From sequence record NC_070650.1: a stretch of 64,000 bases of DNA, one strand, 5' to 3'. The position numbers and the translations under genes were made by a program. This document shows, in pieces, positions 27,761 through 37,284 of this stretch. Numbering within the stretch: the stretch's first letter is position 1; every line of letters starts with the position of its first letter. The notes below the pieces were generated by a model. That model was not told the origin of the DNA. It was given only the letters and a program-made list of their open reading frames with translations, and made no database searches.

Positions 27761-29188
27761 ATGGTAATGAAATTGAAAGGTCGCCGTATTAGCCTGGAAG
27801 AGCTGGCTGAAGGCAACGTAGACGCAGGCGCCGCGGATGCAGTTGCAGCAGGCGATATCGAAACCCGTCTGGAAGTGGAAACCCGTCCGGATGTAGACCT
27901 GGTTATTGCTGAAGGCGATATCGACGACGCAGCTACTGATGTTGAAGTAGCTGAAGATAACGTCGATACTCTCGTTGACACTGGCGAAGAGCTGGCGGCC
28001 ATCCGCAACCAAATCGCCGATACTCTGGAAGATGAAGGTCTGGACGAAGTTAGTGCCGGCCTGGCGCGCACTGCCGCCAACATCGCACTGCGTCGCGTTG
28101 ACAGCGAGCTGGTAACTCCGGCCACTGAGAGCTTCGGCGGTTCTGCCACCGCACGTATGGACAATACCCGCGTAACGATGGAAGCCATCGACGGCAAACT
28201 GCGCCAAATCTGGGAAGCAGTTAAGAAAGCACTAATCGAAGCCTGGAACGCATTCAAGGCCCTGGTCAAACAACTGTTTGACGGTAAAGCTCGCGTAAAA
28301 GCTCAGGCCGAGAAACTGCTGGAAACCATCAAAGCGACCTCTGGCAACGCCGCCGGTGGTGAGAAGATCGAAATCAAAGACACGACCCTGAAAATGATCG
28401 CGGCTCAGCGCCCACTGGCAGCTGACTGGGAAACCCCGGTTCAAGCTGTTCTGACCGCCGTAGGGGCGGCCGATAAACTGGCTGAACAGGAAATCGCGTT
28501 TAACAACGGTCTGGCGGCTGCACTGCAGGGCGTTAACCCGGAAGCAGGTCTGGACGAAGCAACCCGTAAAGTGCTGGGCTTCCTGTCCAGTTACAAACAA
28601 GCGGCTGAAGCCGCAGCGGCCGCATTCAAAACCATCGGCGGTGAAGCGAAAGCAGATATCGACGTACCTGAAGGTTTTGAAGTAGTCGTATCCAACGTTC
28701 TGCCGGGTGGCTACGCGTTTTACGTCGTTGCACCGAAAGAAGGTTCTGATCTGTCTCTGCCGGTTATTCTGGCCAATACCAAATCTGGTATTACCGAAGT
28801 TGAAGTTACTGGCGAATTCTCCGGTGACGTAACTGCGGTATCTGCGGCGTCTGCCATCTCTCTGCTGGAATCTGTTATTGCTGCAATTGATGCGCTGGCT
28901 TCCGATAAACTGGAAGAGCTGGTAGCTGCACAAGACAAAGTCATCAAAGCCGGCGATGCGCTTGCCAATAAAGGTGGCGAAGCTGGCCCGCTGGGTGCCC
29001 TGCTGCGTTCCCTGCCGCGGGTTGTTCGCGGTGTTGCCAAAGGTTCGGCTGACTGTGAAAAATACTCAGTTAAACTGTCCTTTGCCGTGGTCGAAGTGGT
29101 TCGTGCTTCTGCGCGCACTTATGGTAAAACTGGTACCGATGTTGCTAAAACCAGTGATGCCGCTGCAGCTACTGCAGCTGAAGCCTAA
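27761..29188 (+). CDS. Internal head (inner body/ejection) protein with acidic propeptide, phiKZ gp93-97 family
   Basis: Acidic N-terminus with SLE, ATE and TME sites, then EAIDGKLRQIWEAVKK. Strong high-expression codon bias. Confidence 0.75.
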   Translation: MVMKLKGRRISLEELAEGNVDAGAADAVAAGDIETRLEVETRPDVDLVIAEGDIDDAATDVEVAEDNVDTLVDTGEELAAIRNQIADTLEDEGLDEVSAGLARTAANIALRRVDSELVTPATESFGGSATARMDNTRVTMEAIDGKLRQIWEAVKKALIEAWNAFKALVKQLFDGKARVKAQAEKLLETIKATSGNAAGGEKIEIKDTTLKMIAAQRPLAADWETPVQAVLTAVGAADKLAEQEIAFNNGLAAALQGVNPEAGLDEATRKVLGFLSSYKQAAEAAAAAFKTIGGEAKADIDVPEGFEVVVSNVLPGGYAFYVVAPKEGSDLSLPVILANTKSGITEVEVTGEFSGDVTAVSAASAISLLESVIAAIDALASDKLEELVAAQDKVIKAGDALANKGGEAGPLGALLRSLPRVVRGVAKGSADCEKYSVKLSFAVVEVVRASARTYGKTGTDVAKTSDAAAATAAEA

Positions 29189-29260: not shown

Positions 29261-31309
29261 ATGACCGTATCTAAATTACTTCGAATCCCCACTCACGTGC
29301 AGCGTACCGGCGTTTCTCTCGAAGAACGACAGGTAGCAGAAGAACGTGATCCGGATATCGTCGATATGGCTCAGACTCCAGACGATGTCGACACAGACGG
29401 TGTGAATTCAGATGCATCTGCTTCTACAGAGGCCGCATCTCAAGACACCGGCGCACTTCCCGATGACACAGGTGCTGCGTCTACAGAAGCTACAGGTGAC
29501 GATGTTACCACCACTGATGACGCTACCACCGGTGATGAAGGTGCTGCGGCTGCTAGTGCGGATGATACCGCAACCAGCGCCGATGCTGCCGAACAAACTA
29601 ATGCGGATGATGCAGGCGGTGATGCTGCTACATCTGATGCTGCTGACGTTGGCGCCACAACCTCTTCGGAAGCAACCCCTCCGGCGGATAATAGCACGGT
29701 AGATAGCGGTAGCGACGCAGCTAATGCCGACCTCGACAACCAAGCAGATATCACCCCGCCAGAAGACGTGGCTGATGCTGGTCTTGGCGATGCGGCTACC
29801 GATACTTCTGCTGCGGATGCTCCACCTCCGGTAGAAACTCCGATGGATGACATCCCAGAAGAAGCGCTTACCTCGGCGTGGGTTCAGGGTGTCGCTGTAG
29901 ACACACAGCACGATGTCGATGAAGTGGCCGCTGGCGATGAAGAGCTGGCAGACTACGAGCACAACGAAAATGAGCTGCGTACTGCCGCGACAAGTCTGGA
30001 AGAACTTCGTGACTGTTGTATGGCTGTCGTTAACAAAACCCACAAAGAAACCGACGCCGTTAGCACCCCAGTGCAGACTGAAATCGTTTCTGAGGTTAGC
30101 GATAAAGCTGTTGACCTGCTTACTTCCGGCGCCAACGCTACACTGGCCCATGTGGGGTCTGAGCTGGATATGCCGGCATCCATGGAAAGCGCCTCCACCC
30201 CGACTGAACGTCTGGGCATCGCGCTTGAAGCCATCGACGGTAAAATCAAACAGATCTGGGAAACCATCAAACGACTGGCTCTGCAGGCCTGGGATGCTTT
30301 CGTAAACTTTGTTAAAGGCATCTTTGATAAAGCGCAGCGCTTCCGCAATCAGGTAGCAAACCTGCGCAAGTTTGTGGTTAAGTTCAAAGGGGCTACGCCA
30401 GAAACCAGTGAGTTTGAAAACAACGCCGTTTGGGCGGGTTGTTGTGTAGAACCTCGAGCAGGTCAATTCGAGTTCTCTCAATCTGAGGTTTCAAAACAAT
30501 TTGAAACCTACACCAGTGCGGCGAAACCGTATCTGCTGAATGCCAGCAAAGCACTGGTTCCAGGCATCAATATGGTGTTTGACAAAGTCGCGGCCATCGA
30601 CCCAGAAAAACCAGAAAGCATTGATGCCATGTGGAATGCTTTCGGGGCGCTCATGAACCGCTATGAAAAAGCGGTGGTTATGGTAACCAAAATGTCTGGT
30701 GGTGAGCGTTCTCTGAGTGCGGCTGATGTAGCCGATGGTTTTAGATCGACCGATGGGTTACTTCCGATCTATTCTGACACTGGTTTAGGCGGTGGTGGTC
30801 TGGCAACAGAAATTGTCGATCCTAAAACAGACCTGCAAATTGCGGCGAAAGCGTTTTGGACTGGGGCTAGTTCCTATTACCTGCGCGGCCATCCGGTAGT
30901 GCCAAGCGATGCCAAAGTGCCTACTCTGACCGCAGACCAGATGGAAGGCCTGCTTGACCAAATCGATGACGCGATGGAGACCATCATCGATTATCGCGTG
31001 GTCTTCGATGAGTTTGAAAAACAGCTGGCCAAAGCTCAGCAGGCTACTGCGAAACTCGCGAGCAAACTGCCGGAGAAAGAAGGGACGTCGACGTACCAGA
31101 CTATCCTGGCAACCATGAAGTTGGTCCCTAAACTGACCAAGTTCAACCAGGCAGTCATCACCGGGTTGTATGTTCAGTCCAGCTCTATTCTTCAGTACAT
31201 TGTTGCGTCGACCAAACAGTACTCGACCAACGATGCGGCTGTTGAATCTACGGCGAATACTGTTGCAGATCCTGGCGCGGCTAAACTTCCGTCTCCGGAA
31301 GCAGCATAA
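29261..31309 (+). CDS. Internal head protein with very long acidic propeptide, phiKZ gp93-97 family
   Basis: About 320-aa D/A/T-rich N-terminus, then ALEAIDGKIKQIWETIK; paralogue of 27761-29188. Confidence 0.75.
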   Translation: MTVSKLLRIPTHVQRTGVSLEERQVAEERDPDIVDMAQTPDDVDTDGVNSDASASTEAASQDTGALPDDTGAASTEATGDDVTTTDDATTGDEGAAAASADDTATSADAAEQTNADDAGGDAATSDAADVGATTSSEATPPADNSTVDSGSDAANADLDNQADITPPEDVADAGLGDAATDTSAADAPPPVETPMDDIPEEALTSAWVQGVAVDTQHDVDEVAAGDEELADYEHNENELRTAATSLEELRDCCMAVVNKTHKETDAVSTPVQTEIVSEVSDKAVDLLTSGANATLAHVGSELDMPASMESASTPTERLGIALEAIDGKIKQIWETIKRLALQAWDAFVNFVKGIFDKAQRFRNQVANLRKFVVKFKGATPETSEFENNAVWAGCCVEPRAGQFEFSQSEVSKQFETYTSAAKPYLLNASKALVPGINMVFDKVAAIDPEKPESIDAMWNAFGALMNRYEKAVVMVTKMSGGERSLSAADVADGFRSTDGLLPIYSDTGLGGGGLATEIVDPKTDLQIAAKAFWTGASSYYLRGHPVVPSDAKVPTLTADQMEGLLDQIDDAMETIIDYRVVFDEFEKQLAKAQQATAKLASKLPEKEGTSTYQTILATMKLVPKLTKFNQAVITGLYVQSSSILQYIVASTKQYSTNDAAVESTANTVADPGAAKLPSPEAA

Positions 31310-31400: not shown

Positions 31401-32693
31401 ATGACTGGGTTGGTGAACACCCCGCAATCAGAATTACCGAATTCCCCGACGTCGTATGCCGAAGTTCATCAGATGGTGACTGAACTCGCGCACCAACAAA
31501 ACGACATTAGCAAAAAAGACCACCAGGTACAAGAACACACTCAGGTCGTTGACGAGCTTCGCAATACTGGCGACATGATATCCGCACTGGGGGCTATCGT
31601 TAAATACAATATTGATGGTAAGCCAATGTCGCCGTTCCAGTCTTCACTGATGAAAAATGCCTTATGGCATAGTGGGAGCATCAGTCAAGAAGCGTATAAC
31701 AGCGATACCGTCATCTCTATGGAGTCCTTACGCAAAATCCTGGCCGACATATGGGTTGCAATTAAAAACAGCCTAAAACGTCTTTTAGAGCGTTTAATTG
31801 ACTTCTTAACGACCTACTACGGAATGCTAAATACCGTAGAAGATTTGGCTTTGAAATTAAAAGCCATACTCAAAGAAAATAATTGGCAAACCGTAACGGT
31901 AACCTCGTTTCCATCTAGCAATGCACGCAAAATTGCCGTTGGTGGAAAACTGAAGTCAACCTGGGTGGAAGACGTCGCCAGAACATTGACGGTATTAGCG
32001 GACTCGGACAAAAATGTCATTGATGCAATCGGTGACTTTAATCTTCGCGCTACCGACCAGGTAATTAAAACATTAAAAACGGATAAACTTCCCGATTTCA
32101 ATTGGGGTGTGTTATCCGGCACAATCGGCACCCTGCGGCGGACTATGGCTGCCACCGTAGCACGATACGGCGTGACGTCATACACCAAACCTTTTGGGGT
32201 TGAAACCTATTACTGTAGTGGCGTATTACCTGGCGAATGGCAGTTGGGTTGTAAACAAATTCCGATTCAAAACGCCAATAGTCAGCACGAGGCTGCGCGA
32301 GCAATCATTGAAGGCATGGGCGATCAGTATTTCGTCATCCTGTCTAAAGAACAAACGGGGCCTGATGCTTTGCCATTACCTTCCTTAAATGTCATTGAAT
32401 CTGCATGCGATGATATCATCGAGGTAGTCACTGTGTTGAAAGATTCTACTCGCAAACTGGATGTAGATCTCAACGACGCCTTGAAAAAATCCATTGATAC
32501 AATCGATGGGTTGATGCATCGCATTCAGGGAAGTACCGAAATCAAAGATCGGGAAGCGGTGGACTTCGTCATGAGGGCGACTCAAATATCCAGTAAACTT
32601 AGTCGTCCCTATTTGCAAGTGCTGGGGAATATCCTGCCCGCATACACTCGGGCTTTATTACAATGCGTTCTGATCTATCGTGATGGGGCATAA
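31401..32693 (+). CDS. Internal head protein, phiKZ gp93-97 family
   Basis: ISMESLRKILADIWVAIKNSLK matches the cleavage-site-plus-helix pattern of its two upstream paralogues. Confidence 0.65.
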   Translation: MTGLVNTPQSELPNSPTSYAEVHQMVTELAHQQNDISKKDHQVQEHTQVVDELRNTGDMISALGAIVKYNIDGKPMSPFQSSLMKNALWHSGSISQEAYNSDTVISMESLRKILADIWVAIKNSLKRLLERLIDFLTTYYGMLNTVEDLALKLKAILKENNWQTVTVTSFPSSNARKIAVGGKLKSTWVEDVARTLTVLADSDKNVIDAIGDFNLRATDQVIKTLKTDKLPDFNWGVLSGTIGTLRRTMAATVARYGVTSYTKPFGVETYYCSGVLPGEWQLGCKQIPIQNANSQHEAARAIIEGMGDQYFVILSKEQTGPDALPLPSLNVIESACDDIIEVVTVLKDSTRKLDVDLNDALKKSIDTIDGLMHRIQGSTEIKDREAVDFVMRATQISSKLSRPYLQVLGNILPAYTRALLQCVLIYRDGA

Positions 32694-32729
32694 ACTCAAT
32701 GAGGGAGGCTAATGGCCTCCCTTTTATGC
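32688..32729 (+). terminator. Terminator-like hairpin repeat
   Basis: GCATAA...GGGAGGC-TAATG-GCCTCCC-TTTTATGC. Confidence 0.75.
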
Positions 32730-32829
32730 TGAATATAAAAAAATACTATTTAGGATTACAATTTGAGTACACTTGGGGATGAAACATAAAAGACCTAAGG
32801 AAACGTTCCGTGCGAAGCACTCCACGTTA

Positions 32830-32990
32830 CTATCACTAATTAAAAAGATAAAATAAATATACTTAGTAAGAAAGAAAAAAGATCTTAGATTTGGGGGTTT
32901 GGGGGAGGGGTAGGAGGAGCGAAGCTCCTCCGTAGGGGAGGGTCGTAAAACATGATCGTGTGGGGAAGGGAAGTAAACCCTTCCCAAATA
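32830..32990. other. Non-coding A-rich tract followed by G-run cluster and two hairpins (candidate origin or packaging signal)
   Basis: A-rich 32838-32880. G-runs at 32893-97, 32901-05, 32907-10, 32935-38 and 32940-42. Hairpins GGAGGAGC-GAA-GCTCCTCC (32913-32931) and GGGAAGGG-AAGTAAA-CCCTTCCC (32963-32985). The function is inferred. Confidence 0.5.
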
Positions 32991-33050
32991 TGCTGATTAA
33001 TCGTTATTCAGAATTATCGTGTGTTTAACTCTACTAAGAGGTTTACTATT

Positions 33051-33488
33051 ATGAAACATTCTATTGTCCCTACACAAGCACCTAAATTCAGTATGATGGT
33101 AGGTTCCAGATCGTTGGAGACGGGTGTCAAGCTCACCTTAGAAGGTAATGGTCGCATTGATTTCTCACCGGTAATGTCCCAAGTGGTTGCGCCGAACAAT
33201 GCACTGCAATCGACCGTATATTGGTCAGAGCGCGAACCATCAACCTACTTTCTTAGTCTAGGCCAATATTCGTGTACGCCGTGTGGAATCATCAAATTCC
33301 ATGAGGGGGATGTTGAAGAACCTAATGGAACGACGATGGAGTCCTTACTCCATGTTGTTGAACATCGACTCGAGTACCATCAATCCGGCAAATACCCCTG
33401 TAAGGAAAATGCAGCGGCATTGAGTGCCGTACGGGCCGCTTTGGTCGCGTTACATCATCGTAGCGAAAAACAAGGAAAAGTATCATGA
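33051..33488 (+). CDS. tad1: Tad1-like anti-defence sponge protein (anti-Thoeris/anti-CBASS) with N-terminal extension
   Basis: The C-terminal half IKFHEG...NG....SLLHVVEHRLEYHQSGKYPCKENAAALSAVRAALVALHHR aligns by eye with the Tad1 core as I recall it (IKFQKG...HG...[40 protein letters not shown]). GAGG RBS before ATG 33051. Confidence 0.75.
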   Translation: MKHSIVPTQAPKFSMMVGSRSLETGVKLTLEGNGRIDFSPVMSQVVAPNNALQSTVYWSEREPSTYFLSLGQYSCTPCGIIKFHEGDVEEPNGTTMESLLHVVEHRLEYHQSGKYPCKENAAALSAVRAALVALHHRSEKQGKVS

Positions 33489-34348
33489 TTCAAGTTGTAT
33501 CTGCCTTTCCCGGCTGCGGGAAGAGTTGGTTTCATCGACAGTTTACTGATGTTCTGGATAGTGACTCCAGCGCTTTTGATAAATCGGCATTCCCACAAAA
33601 CTATATCTGCCATATCCGCAATACGATGGTACGAGATAAATGTATCTTCGTTAGCAGCCACGGTATGGTCAGGACTGCCATGATTGATTCTGGAATAGAA
33701 TATATCCTGGTTTATCCCAGCCACGATATCAAAGAGGAGTTCCTCGAACGGTATCGCAAGCGTGGCAGCGAACCTCAATTTATTGAATTGTTGGATAAGA
33801 ACTGGGATGGTTGGATTGGGGAATGTCAGGGGCAGCAAGGCTGCGTGCACGTGGTATTGCAATCAGGCCAATATCTCGCGGACGTCATTGAGTACGACCC
33901 ACTTTATCGTCGCTTCACAATTAAAGAAGATGCGACTACGTTTACCCCACAGCCGCACAAACATAAAACGGAATACATTGCCGTAGACTTCGACGGGACA
34001 ATTGTAACCAATGATTGGCCTGAGGTTGGTAAAGATACGGGTGCAATTGCGGTGCTGAGGGATTTACTTAGCGCGGGCTGTAAGTTAATCTTACATACGG
34101 TCAGGGAAGGGAAAGAGCTTAATGAAGCATTAGCTTATTGCGCCAAACATGGAATCGATTTTATCGGAGTTAATGAGAATCGTGAGTTTCCTCCCGGCGG
34201 CACCATAACAGATAAACCTTATGCGGACGTATATATCGATGACCGGGCGATGGGGTGTCCGCTTACTCACAATCCACTCACACATAAAGAACCTTATGTA
34301 GATTGGTTTGCGATTAGAAAACAACTGGAGAAACGAGGAGTACTATAA
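33485..34348 (+). CDS. P-loop NTPase/kinase-like domain fused to a HAD-family phosphatase domain
   Basis: N-terminal Walker A AFPGCGKS. C-terminal HAD motif I DFDGT, motif II LHTVR and motif III/IV KPYADVYIDDR. ATGA overlap with the Tad1-like gene. Confidence 0.8.
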   Translation: MIQVVSAFPGCGKSWFHRQFTDVLDSDSSAFDKSAFPQNYICHIRNTMVRDKCIFVSSHGMVRTAMIDSGIEYILVYPSHDIKEEFLERYRKRGSEPQFIELLDKNWDGWIGECQGQQGCVHVVLQSGQYLADVIEYDPLYRRFTIKEDATTFTPQPHKHKTEYIAVDFDGTIVTNDWPEVGKDTGAIAVLRDLLSAGCKLILHTVREGKELNEALAYCAKHGIDFIGVNENREFPPGGTITDKPYADVYIDDRAMGCPLTHNPLTHKEPYVDWFAIRKQLEKRGVL

Positions 34349-35892
34349 TGCCGAGTATCGGACTTAACCTCCCTGAGGGGTATGAGTTAATCTCACGCCC
34401 TGTTGCTCAGGGTATTGCTCAGCGGGTGATATCACATCTGGGAATTCAAGATAAAGTCAGTATCCTGTTTCCTGGCGATGCTGAGGTAGCGGCTCAGGCC
34501 GGCAGTACATTGGGGGAACAGAAGGAAGGGGGTCCGAATACACGCTTTGCCAGTACTCAAAGACTTCAAGTCAGCATGAATGAACAGGTTCTGGAGGGGG
34601 AGGTTTTAGCAACCCCAACTTGGCAAGTTAACCAACCCCCCATTTTCTCCGACCCTAAACTAGGCATCGCCATGAAACCTATCTACCATTTGGTGGAAGG
34701 GGTATTGTCTTTTACTTATCGTGCCGCTGACCAGACCAGTGCAGAACAATGGAAAAATAGACTGTTACGATATATTTCCCAAAACCGCGCTGAAATGTAC
34801 CATGAAATTATTTATGCGTATACCATCCCAGGCCAGTTCATTACCATCTTGGCTGAAATTCACAAGTTGCGAGAACAAGTCGCACCGTATGGCGACACCG
34901 TCATTGAATATCTGCGCAACCATTTCAGTGATAGGGTGGATGTTAAAACCAACATGGCGGGTAAGGGTGCTGCGTTTGCCGTGGATGAAATTCAGAAGGG
35001 CGTCATCGGTTGGTTTGATTGGACTATCCCGCCAACCCCAGAAAAAACCAGTGAAGAAAGCACGTATACCGCTACCTTTGAGTTCCATTATCAATATCAG
35101 CAGGTTACTGGGGTACATCTGAAATACCCTATCATCGTACACCAACAGCTTTTGCCCAGTAATTTACGTCCGTTGAATTTATCCTACGAACTTAATCGCA
35201 GCTTACCGACGTATATGTCTTTAGCTAAGCAGGAATATCAGGCGGTTAAAAAGGAAACAGATGGCTATTATGCAACGCAGGAAGGTATCCGTTATCCTGA
35301 TTTTGATGAGTGGGCGCCAAATCACGTGATGGCCGATCAGATTCCATTACTGACTGTAATGTTGACTATTTCTGCGGATGACCCTCGATTTCTTTTGAAC
35401 ATCCAAGAACTATCCCATTGGAATTTTAATCCAGATATTCTCGAGTTTCTGCTGGTTGAACCTAAATGGGCAACATTAACCAAATTTACCCCAGTCTTAA
35501 TCACGCTGTATTGTGATGGCGACAAATGCGATGACCAGATCGTACAGTTGGATGCTTCCGGCGATGTACGTACAACCATCGATTTGGACTTAAGGCGCCA
35601 GTACCACATCGTGATTAGTGCGATGTCTGATTTATCGCAGTTGAATAAAAATAACACCGATCTTTTGCGACAATACCCTAAAGCCGCCATGGTTGTGCTG
35701 TATGCCTTAGAACCTCGTTTAGAATCTTGGGGTAAATTACCAGAAGTATTGGGTGATAAGCTTGTATCTCGCGTGGGTTGGTTGGAAGCAATCAACGTCA
35801 TTAAAACAACTTCCCCTATTTTCCGTACAGCAAAATACTACTCACGTTTTACGGTGGGGTCTTACATCCTGGCTACAGCGGAGAAAAAATAA
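34348..35892 (+). CDS. Virion structural protein (phiKZ gp98-like)
   Basis: 514 aa at the syntenic position; TAATG overlap with the previous gene. Confidence 0.55.
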   Translation: MPSIGLNLPEGYELISRPVAQGIAQRVISHLGIQDKVSILFPGDAEVAAQAGSTLGEQKEGGPNTRFASTQRLQVSMNEQVLEGEVLATPTWQVNQPPIFSDPKLGIAMKPIYHLVEGVLSFTYRAADQTSAEQWKNRLLRYISQNRAEMYHEIIYAYTIPGQFITILAEIHKLREQVAPYGDTVIEYLRNHFSDRVDVKTNMAGKGAAFAVDEIQKGVIGWFDWTIPPTPEKTSEESTYTATFEFHYQYQQVTGVHLKYPIIVHQQLLPSNLRPLNLSYELNRSLPTYMSLAKQEYQAVKKETDGYYATQEGIRYPDFDEWAPNHVMADQIPLLTVMLTISADDPRFLLNIQELSHWNFNPDILEFLLVEPKWATLTKFTPVLITLYCDGDKCDDQIVQLDASGDVRTTIDLDLRRQYHIVISAMSDLSQLNKNNTDLLRQYPKAAMVVLYALEPRLESWGKLPEVLGDKLVSRVGWLEAINVIKTTSPIFRTAKYYSRFTVGSYILATAEKK

Positions 35893-37284
35893 ATGGCCAT
35901 CATTAACCCGAACGCAGATAACCCGGCGAGCGTTACAGTCAACCCCAACATCAAACCCAACGAATATCGTGGCGTGGTTGAATCTAACCGATATACCCCC
36001 GCACGTTCTTTGCTGACCCACATCAGCGGCTATCCCATGGAAGTGGAGTATTATAGCCAATATTTGAACGTAGACAACGCGGTATCCGGCCAGCAAATTA
36101 ATCGCATTTCTCCGGTACAACAATATCTGCGCATCAGAAAAATGGAGTTGATGGTATCAACCCCCATTAATCAGTCGCAGGACCAGACCTCCAGAGAAAT
36201 GTCTGCGGTAGGTAATGCTACCACATATCCAGGCATCATCCCTAATGACGGGGATATGTTTATTGCAGATGGCCTGGACGGTAATCGCTACCTGTATCAG
36301 ATTCGAAATGTAGAACAGAAAACAATTTTAAAAGACACCTGTTATACTTTTGAGTTCTTCATGATTGAAATATTGTCGACTCAACGTAACAGCGATCTTT
36401 TAACTAAAACCGTTAAAGACACTACGTTTGTCCGCGATTTCGTTTATACCAATCAGCGCCCGCTATTGGTCGATGAAGAATACACCTTCGTATTAAAAGG
36501 GCGTCAATTCATCAAAGATAGTCAGGACCGGTATTTAAAAGATTATCTTAATAAGAGATACCTTACTTTTATCATCCCCGGGCAAGAGTTGACCTCGTAT
36601 GATCCCTATTTGAGTAAAGCGGTATACGCCTTACTCGATGGCCGCGAACATTCACGGAAAGCAGATATTCGCTTGCAGAACTGTGAGGGGGGATATGCTT
36701 ACCCGATTGAAACTGTTTGGGATGGTATTTTAAATTGTAATGGCGATAGTCGTGATACTTGGGCAACCAAGATGGGCATGATTTACAGTAGCGACTTGGC
36801 CAACCAGCCGATGTACGGTAGCATTAAATATTCCGGTATCTTCCAGTTCTATTCACCATACGGACATCCAGATACCATTGCCACATTACCCGATGATTTT
36901 TATTTGCTGTATTACGGGATGGGTGAAATTACTGAAACCACATTGCGGCCGCCCTATCGCCCTCTTTCCATTTCCGCTTTTGCTCCCGCTACGGATTTGG
37001 GTAATGTAGACCAAGTTGGCAATAACGTGGCCACTACAGCACCCACGTTGGTCCGCCCTACGGGAAGCGATGATTATTATGTTTTCAGTGAAAACTTTTA
37101 TCTGAAAACAACCAATCAAACGGTGCTTGAATCTCAGGTAAATGCGCTGTTGGATGGGATTACTTTAAACCGACCGCATCTGTTGCAGCTAATCAACGAT
37201 TCTTATCGTTGGGGGCATTTAGATAGATTCTACTATCTTCCGGTATTATGGGTACTGGTACGCAAAGCACTATTAGAGGTGTAA
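35893..37284 (+). CDS. Virion structural protein (phiKZ gp99-like)
   Basis: 463 aa abutting the previous gene; ATTYPGIIPNDGDMFIAD pattern; syntenic position. Confidence 0.55.
   Translation: MAIINPNADNPASVTVNPNIKPNEYRGVVESNRYTPARSLLTHISGYPMEVEYYSQYLNVDNAVSGQQINRISPVQQYLRIRKMELMVSTPINQSQDQTSREMSAVGNATTYPGIIPNDGDMFIADGLDGNRYLYQIRNVEQKTILKDTCYTFEFFMIEILSTQRNSDLLTKTVKDTTFVRDFVYTNQRPLLVDEEYTFVLKGRQFIKDSQDRYLKDYLNKRYLTFIIPGQELTSYDPYLSKAVYALLDGREHSRKADIRLQNCEGGYAYPIETVWDGILNCNGDSRDTWATKMGMIYSSDLANQPMYGSIKYSGIFQFYSPYGHPDTIATLPDDFYLLYYGMGEITETTLRPPYRPLSISAFAPATDLGNVDQVGNNVATTAPTLVRPTGSDDYYVFSENFYLKTTNQTVLESQVNALLDGITLNRPHLLQLINDSYRWGHLDRFYYLPVLWVLVRKALLEV

Follow-up and report, generated by a model that had tools for sequence, protein, structure and literature searches.

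Gene gp123 of Klebsiella phage vB_KvM-Eowyn carries the GenBank label 'structural protein', and the question raised by this locus is whether the label describes what the gene encodes. A sequence-only reading had instead proposed a sponge for immune signals of the Tad1 type, with an additional N-terminal region and a shortened C-tail, in a nucleus-forming jumbo phage. The DNA analysed, hereafter the window, is a stretch of 64,000 nucleotides from record NC_070650.1, in which the record coordinate equals the window coordinate plus 62000. The assignment to Eowyn (LR881104 / NC_070650, 265 kb) follows from 100% identity across the 6 kb surrounding the gene; relatives are the 'Serratia' phages KpHz_2 (96%) and KpGz_1 (83%), both of which have Klebsiella pneumoniae as the isolation host. 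The nucleus-forming character of the phage is well founded, since Eowynvirus was placed in the nucleus-forming family Chimalliviridae (ICTV 2025; PMC12451628) and Magnus, the sole genus-mate of Eowyn, is reported to have both a nuclear shell protein and PhuZ (PMC13757433).

The gene is the annotated CDS LLCLJKAH_00123 / PP187_gp123, at 33051-33488 on the plus strand, and encodes 145 aa plus the stop; its assignment to the Tad1 family draws on the ORF, profile and fold evidence given below. A ribosome-binding site, AAGAGG (33036-33041, plus strand), can be read from the sequence 9 nt before the ATG and is kept in the relatives. At the other end, the stop codon overlaps the start of the next gene in an ATGA at 33485-33488. 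The stretch that had been quoted as Tad1-like is found exactly, as residues 81-137 of the translated ORF.

Searches with the protein sequence identify gp123 as a genuine but divergent relative of Tad1. With phmmer against all PDB chains, only Tad1 entries (8KBB, 8KBG, 8KBH, 8KBE and 7UAV, the last under a misleading deposited name) and phiKZ gp184 (8Y6V chain I) were matched, at E 1e-4 to 3e-4. A profile of five sequences, gp123 and four homologues of 70-98% identity, matched the PDB Tad1 proteins at E 2e-6. When the Eowyn cluster was compared by hhalign with an alignment of 50 Tad1-family proteins, the probability was 99.9% and E 4e-31 over residues 63-140; the 50-member alignment in turn matched solved Tad1 over the full length (E 4.5e-29) and gp184 at E 1.2e-23. 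Both gp123 (E 4e-13) and gp184 (E 3e-18) match PHROG 2428. The family assignment, for which the sequence-only reading had suggested an HMM-type search, is thus borne out by a profile match to solved Tad1 (E 2e-6; hhalign E 4e-31, 99.9%) and by a Foldseek search in which the top 20 PDB matches were all Tad1.

The wider family was reached only by an exhaustive profile search; single-sequence and word-index searches stopped at close relatives. Among 1.84 billion representatives, 1074 proteins matched at E 1e-3 or better, nearly all of them 100-150 aa long and aligned solely to Eowyn residues 75-141. Single-sequence tblastn against phages returned three close relatives, two Vibrio phages and nothing else, and the word-index protein search found four close homologues only. 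Scans of gp123 with the Pfam models gave no match even at E 10, PF24729 (Acb2_Tad1_hairpin) included, and the NCBIfam scan gave none either. Weak precomputed matches to PF24729 do exist in close relatives of gp123, and the model detects just 10 of 139 aligned sequences (134 homologues plus the five proteins of the Eowyn cluster), from which we conclude that it is insensitive. Two proteins, P0005 (1301 aa, 12 matched stretches) and P0054 (756 aa, 8 stretches), were excluded from the alignments. Each matches profile residues 60-107 repeatedly, 8-12 times, and both are probably artefacts of Cys-rich repeats with no relation to Tad1.

Acb2, the other family named in PF24729, has the helical hairpin in common with the Eowyn protein (Pfam groups the two under this entry), and like Tad1 it is a sponge that forms hexamers and has its trinucleotide sites where three-fold interfaces occur (bioRxiv 10.1101/2023.11.15.567273). 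Unlike Acb2, however, the Eowyn protein has the Tad1 beta-sheet preceding the hairpin. No Acb2 chain was found among the phmmer, PDB profile or Foldseek matches, and membership of gp123 in Acb2 was rejected because neither its sequence nor its fold matched solved Acb2.

The fold was examined in a single-chain AlphaFold2 model built from the 139-sequence alignment (mean pLDDT 66). The pLDDT is below 50 for residues 1-38, 56-79 in the beta region and 85-95 in the helices at 96-111 and 118-140. Against the PDB, Foldseek gave 20 matches at E 1e-3 or better, all of them chains of CmTad1 or CbTad1, with a target-normalised TM of 0.56-0.69 over 111-120 aligned columns and E between 1e-5 and 2e-4; the next match was at E 0.26. 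Against predicted viral structures, the protein itself came first, and later matches included proteins named as Acb2/Tad1 hairpin domain-containing as well as a 141-aa protein of Klebsiella phage N1M2. The model therefore predicts the Tad1 fold for gp123, an antiparallel beta-sheet followed by two C-terminal helices, as in CbTad1 (7UAV/7UAW/8SMD/8KBE), CmTad1 (8KBB-8KBD) and SBSphiJ7 Tad1. Identity to CbTad1 and CmTad1 in structural alignment is only 22-25%.

Four regions can be delimited, all on the plus strand. The N-terminal extension, residues 1-38 (33051-33164), is lineage-specific. The beta-sheet of the Tad1 fold occupies residues 39-83 (33165-33299), with predicted strands at 41-45, 54-58, 65-70 and 76-83, and includes Cys75 and Cys78. 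A loop and the Acb2/Tad1 helical hairpin follow at residues 84-137 (33300-33461), with H110, K118, N120, S125 and R137, and a short C-tail of residues 138-145 (33462-33485) provides the 8 residues beyond the invariant Arg. The boundary between extension and Tad1 domain, at about residues 38 and 39, was set by the longest alignments to short Tad1 proteins, which start at Eowyn residues 39-49, where the model has its first confident strand. An extension is therefore present, as had been claimed, but alignments and model put its length at about 38 residues (an offset of 28 relative to CbTad1) and not at about 50.

Extended N-termini are frequent among family members. In our sample of 134 homologues, whose median length is 135 aa, 33 have as much sequence as gp123 or more before the conserved Phe. 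An HMM of gp123 residues 1-66 found no relative outside the Eowyn cluster, within which 19 of the 38 extension positions are invariant among the five relatives. Both extension and tail are kept across these five homologues (70-98% identity, lengths 145-146 aa). In comparison with a 78%-identical relative, dN/dS is 0.16 for the whole gene, about 0.30 for the extension and 0.11-0.12 for the Tad1 domain. The protein, extension included, is under purifying selection.

Tad1 is a hexamer, a trimer of dimers, with six pockets for gcADPR or cyclic dinucleotides and two for trinucleotides (bioRxiv 10.1101/2023.11.15.567273). The residues of both sites were mapped onto gp123 using HMMER alignments and the mutagenesis data of the same report. 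In the gcADPR/cyclic-dinucleotide pocket, CbTad1 F82, N92 and R109 correspond to H110, N120 and R137 of Eowyn, and R113 to Q141 (HMMER) or, with a two-residue insert, K143 (MAFFT). Two of the four pocket residues are thus kept, and two are changed, Phe to His110 and Arg to Gln141/Lys143. The 134 homologues are the best matches to Eowyn's own profile, so that shares per alignment column are biased; in this sample, Asn occupies position 120 in 131 of 134, Arg position 137 in all 134, and the position of H110 is Phe in 114 and His in 9. An Arg four residues beyond the position of R137 is found in 128 of 131 homologues and is absent in Eowyn, unlike in the characterised Tad1 proteins. The changed pocket positions are, accordingly, 85-98% conserved in the sample. 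Gp123 nevertheless retains the family-invariant core positions, among them N120, R137, Q111, G113, C117 and E119, in common with CbTad1 and CmTad1 of Clostridium prophages and SBSphiJ7 Tad1 of a Bacillus phage. Of the conserved Tad1 pattern that the sequence-only reading had described, the core, with N120 and R137, is there, but the pocket is just half conserved.

The tail departs further from the family. Eowyn has 8 residues beyond the invariant Arg, where 88 of the 134 homologues have 15; tails of 8 or fewer were counted in just 3 of them. Relative to characterised Tad1, the protein has 38 extra residues at the N-terminus and a tail 7 residues shorter. With a tail of just 8 residues instead of the usual 15, it is without the stretch (residues 116-122 of CbTad1) that makes up the lid and becomes ordered over the bound ligand. 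The C-terminus had been described as ending a few residues early; the shortening is real, but it is more than a trim, the lost part being the lid of the gcADPR/cyclic-dinucleotide pocket (bioRxiv 10.1101/2023.11.15.567273). An assembly artefact is not the cause, because the short tail is kept in all five relatives and the stop overlaps the next start.

At the putative trinucleotide site, the residues are chemically similar to those of CbTad1 and CmTad1. CbTad1 R90 and T97 (R88 and T95 in CmTad1) correspond to K118 and S125, both conservative replacements. A pair of R/K and S/T at these positions occurs in 14 of the 134 best homologues, a share from the biased sample that disagrees with the published estimate of trinucleotide-site substitutions in only 6% of Tad1 proteins (bioRxiv 10.1101/2023.11.15.567273). 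The residues of the hexamer interface are not conserved: the five interface residues of CmTad1 correspond to R128, A129, V132, A133 and H136, with none of the five identical.

Several Cys and His residues also differ between the Eowyn cluster and the rest of the family. In Eowyn, other residues stand in place of the G-G-A-x-H motif that 60-79% of homologues carry ahead of the conserved Tyr66; the cluster is without the His before Tyr66 (60% of homologues) and has one extra His not shared by other family members. Cys75, Cys78 and His101 are peculiar to the cluster, Cys75 and Cys78 (33273-33284) forming a Cys-x-x-Cys pair not seen in other family members. His101 and His105 lie at 33351-33365 and Cys117 at 33399-33401. 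The CmTad1 structure contains a Zn ion, and a metal site may therefore have been rebuilt in the Eowyn cluster.

The gene lies among genes for head and other virion proteins. Upstream, three paralogues of the phiKZ-type internal head protein (PF12699, by family match) are encoded at 27761-29188, 29261-31309 and 31401-32693 (the third on the plus strand), preceded by a gene for a gp91-type vertex-binding protein (PF25618, PhiKZ_gp91). Downstream, gp123 is translationally coupled to a gene for a 287-aa fusion (33485-34348, plus strand) that has a P-loop domain at the N-terminus (phrog_4182, E 2e-55) and, at the C-terminus, a HAD-type phosphatase of the BT0820 family (E 4e-24). This is overlapped by the orthologue of phiKZ gp98, a virion protein (34348-35892, plus strand), which abuts the gene for the head-to-tail joining protein (35893-37284) with no gap; beyond it lie more virion genes, spaced 0-6 nt apart. 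The order gp91-like gene, three PF12699 genes, gp123 and gp98/gp99 orthologues is the same in a metagenomic relative of 78% identity. The 287-aa protein carries the labels 'gp95' or 'phosphoheptose isomerase', and its kinase-plus-HAD layout recalls, by analogy, polynucleotide kinase/phosphatase. Hundreds of phages have the P-loop and HAD halves apart from each other; at full length, the fusion was observed in Eowyn-like phages alone.

Between the third internal head protein gene and gp123 lies a non-coding spacer of 357 bp (32694-33050, plus strand). It contains three hairpins, one of them a GC hairpin, along with an AT-rich stretch and a G-rich run. The GC hairpin (32702-32722) is terminator-like and directly follows the stop of the upstream head gene; its stem sequence is changed in a relative with the pairing retained. 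Identity of the spacer to the relative is 78-80%, as high as that of the genes on either side, against a 51% difference at synonymous sites in the adjacent gene. A 32-nt block at 32800-32831 is identical in three phages, and the spacer has a run of four or more G-tracts. Searches of the spacer against Rfam gave nothing above chance (best E 0.26), a tRNA search found none, and no compensatory pairs were found among three sequences.

The occurrence of Tad1 in a nucleus-forming phage is already known (PMC11297242, PMC12676376, PMC13282480) from phiKZ gp184 (8Y6V chain I, identical to KTN4_224), which like the Eowyn protein is a Tad1-domain protein of Chimalliviridae in PHROG 2428. In the phiKZ capsid it is a minor component, part of the vertex-binding complex, and a substrate of the head protease (PMC11297242). 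In a transposon study of phiKZ it was called Tad1 and found to be non-essential, its N-terminus being described as wedged in the capsid and its C-terminus as freed and injected (PMC12676376); a 2026 review likewise describes phiKZ Tad1 as injected, and as blocking CBASS and Thoeris by sequestration (PMC13282480). Reviews name Tad1 as the sole anti-defence protein described for jumbo phages (PMC13282480). In both gp184 and gp123 the Tad1 domain is C-terminal to an added N-terminal region, and both genes are associated with head genes, in different genome positions; that of phiKZ is located after gp181-183. The differences are considerable, however. Gp184 has 230 aa, about 116 of them ahead of the domain, and its tail is full-length; Tyr takes the place of the Phe, and Glu/Asn stand at the positions of K118/S125. 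By BLASTP, the two proteins align only over gp123 residues 92-137 and gp184 169-214, their N-termini being dissimilar. Homology of the extension to the gp184 N-terminus was rejected on this result together with the HMM of residues 1-66, which found nothing outside the cluster.

Comparison with other phages shows that the slot is shared by a second lineage. The more distant Erwinia phage pEa_SNUABM_54 has an unannotated 131-aa ORF, a divergent member of the Tad1 family (L011:4630-5025; PHROG 2428 at E 1e-5, hhalign 95% and E 3e-8) in the same slot, between internal-head-protein-type genes and the gp98 orthologue. The head-module slot is therefore probably old, and the idea that gp123 and its neighbour are a recent insertion into the head module is weakened. 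The Erwinia ORF has a full-length tail and is without the conserved C-x-E-N motif. The arrangement at this slot is different in Erwinia phage RAY and in Serratia phage Moabite.

Elsewhere in Chimalliviridae, Aeromonas phages D6 and ZPAH34 and Serratia phage Sureiya have short Tad1 homologues beside RNA-polymerase genes, apart from the head genes. The D6 homologue adjoins the annotated nuclear shell gene, and the gene at the same position in ZPAH34 and Sureiya is unannotated. Directly after the Tad1 homologue, ZPAH34, D6 and Sureiya each have a gene of about 155-160 aa (L007:3962-4821, L005:3944-4763 and L004:3866-4786, respectively), annotated in ZPAH34 as 'RNA ligase/cyclic nucleotide phosphodiesterase', and the pair may be an anti-signalling unit of two genes. 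Tad1-domain genes are frequent in jumbo phages in general: tblastn with one family member matched 207 phage records (66 Pseudomonas, 19 Aeromonas), most of them of 230-320 kb. The label 'structural protein' is also attached to Tad1-domain genes in unrelated small or SPO1-like phages, namely orf71 of Lactococcus phage 1706 (L006:2486-2839) and genes of Bacillus phages JBP901, PK16 and Emiliahah.

Taken from family membership, fold and purifying selection, the probable function of gp123 is that of a Tad1-type sponge for nucleotide signals with a re-tuned pocket, a reading that we favour with some reserve. The protein would oligomerise and sequester the signals made by TIR (Thoeris) or cGAS-like (CBASS) enzymes of the host, so that the effectors would never be switched on. 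The phage nucleus does not block such small-molecule pathways, and it is against these signals that gp123 would act. The residue map suggests that trinucleotide binding would be the better-preserved activity, because K118 and S125 keep the chemistry of that site, and that gcADPR and dinucleotide binding would be weakened or re-tuned, because the lid and one of the two arginines are lost and His stands for Phe.

How far the pocket has changed could also be read as a change of purpose. The Tad1 fold might have been redirected to a different small molecule, or to joint action with the P-loop/HAD phosphatase, and away from Thoeris and CBASS signals. Substitutions at positions 85-98% conserved in the sample, a tail length (8 residues or fewer) shared with only 3 of 134 homologues, and translational coupling to an enzyme fusion of nucleotide type that only Eowyn-like phages were seen to have all point that way, but such redirection is unlikely on balance: N120, R137, Q111, G113, C117, E119 and the rest of the family-invariant core are kept, K118 and S125 retain the trinucleotide-site chemistry, and Tad1 homologues that differ in their dinucleotide spectrum keep their sponge function (bioRxiv 10.1101/2023.11.15.567273). 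Loss of the lid and of two pocket residues might even suggest a decaying relic without function; a dN/dS of 0.16, a conserved tail and a frame that stays intact, at 145-146 aa, in five relatives with identity as low as 70% make this highly improbable. In a bolder version of the sponge reading, which we consider rather unlikely as a whole, a lid-less Tad1, its pocket remodelled by His110, by loss of the Arg four residues beyond R137 and by the new Cys75/Cys78 pair, would bind another spectrum of immune nucleotides than characterised Tad1 proteins do (for example trinucleotides only, or a signal so far unconnected with Tad1) and would be pre-loaded into the head by means of a 38-residue targeting segment, so as to act before the nucleus forms.

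Where a Tad1-type sponge would act in the Eowyn infection cycle is a separate matter. By analogy with phiKZ gp184, gp123 may be packaged in the head and reach the host together with the DNA, a substantial possibility that we put somewhat short of even. It is suggested by the phiKZ precedent and by the position of the gene, which comes after the internal head protein genes and is the first in a closely packed series of virion genes. If the protein is packaged, the N-terminal extension would be a candidate targeting segment. Its one protease-type motif (S/A/G-x-E) is S21-L22-E23, which two of the four relatives do not keep; E31, with T or S at the second position ahead of it, is invariant in the relatives, and the A-x-E motif of the SPN3US prohead protease (PMC10052503) does not occur in gp123. 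Against packaging, the extension has no similarity to gp184, and the hairpin and 357-bp spacer separate gp123 from the upstream head genes. These same facts, the lack of similarity to the capsid-bound part of gp184 and the gene's own upstream spacer behind a hairpin, fit an unpackaged sponge, confined to the cytoplasm in both synthesis and use, the extension then being an extra strand, an element of oligomerisation or stability, or a disordered leader. This is plausible but tentative. Tad1 homologues are mostly small free-standing proteins (median 135 aa in the sample), and those of D6, ZPAH34 and Sureiya are encoded beside RNA-polymerase genes and not head genes; however, gp123 is joined without a gap to the virion-gene run, two lineages keep its slot by the internal head proteins, and its extension is under purifying selection. 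The unexplained GenBank label would fit a purely structural minor head protein, with the Tad1-like fold as a building block of the capsid, but we regard this as very doubtful. The capsid-bound part of the phiKZ protein is described as the gp184 N-terminus and not its Tad1 domain (PMC12676376), 8y6v chain I is not among the Foldseek matches to the model, and the vertex complex of Goslar is without a gp184 homologue (bioRxiv 10.64898/2026.04.21.720040). Nor is there an obvious reason for a brick to keep the ligand-facing N120 and R137 invariant.

The novelty of a Tad1 gene in Eowyn is modest, because homologues are known in phiKZ and present in many jumbo phages. The analysis provides a corrected annotation for a gene currently labelled 'structural protein', and Tad1 is thereby extended to a Klebsiella phage of Chimalliviridae. 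It also illustrates that curated models such as those of Pfam and NCBIfam overlook divergent Tad1 genes. With its lid-less tail and altered pocket, gp123 is a natural comparison for learning which parts of Tad1 set the choice of ligand. If the 'structural protein' labels in the small and SPO1-like phages come from virion proteomics, packaging of Tad1 may extend beyond phiKZ, and the conserved slot by the internal head proteins bears on how general virion-delivered sponges are in nucleus-forming phages.
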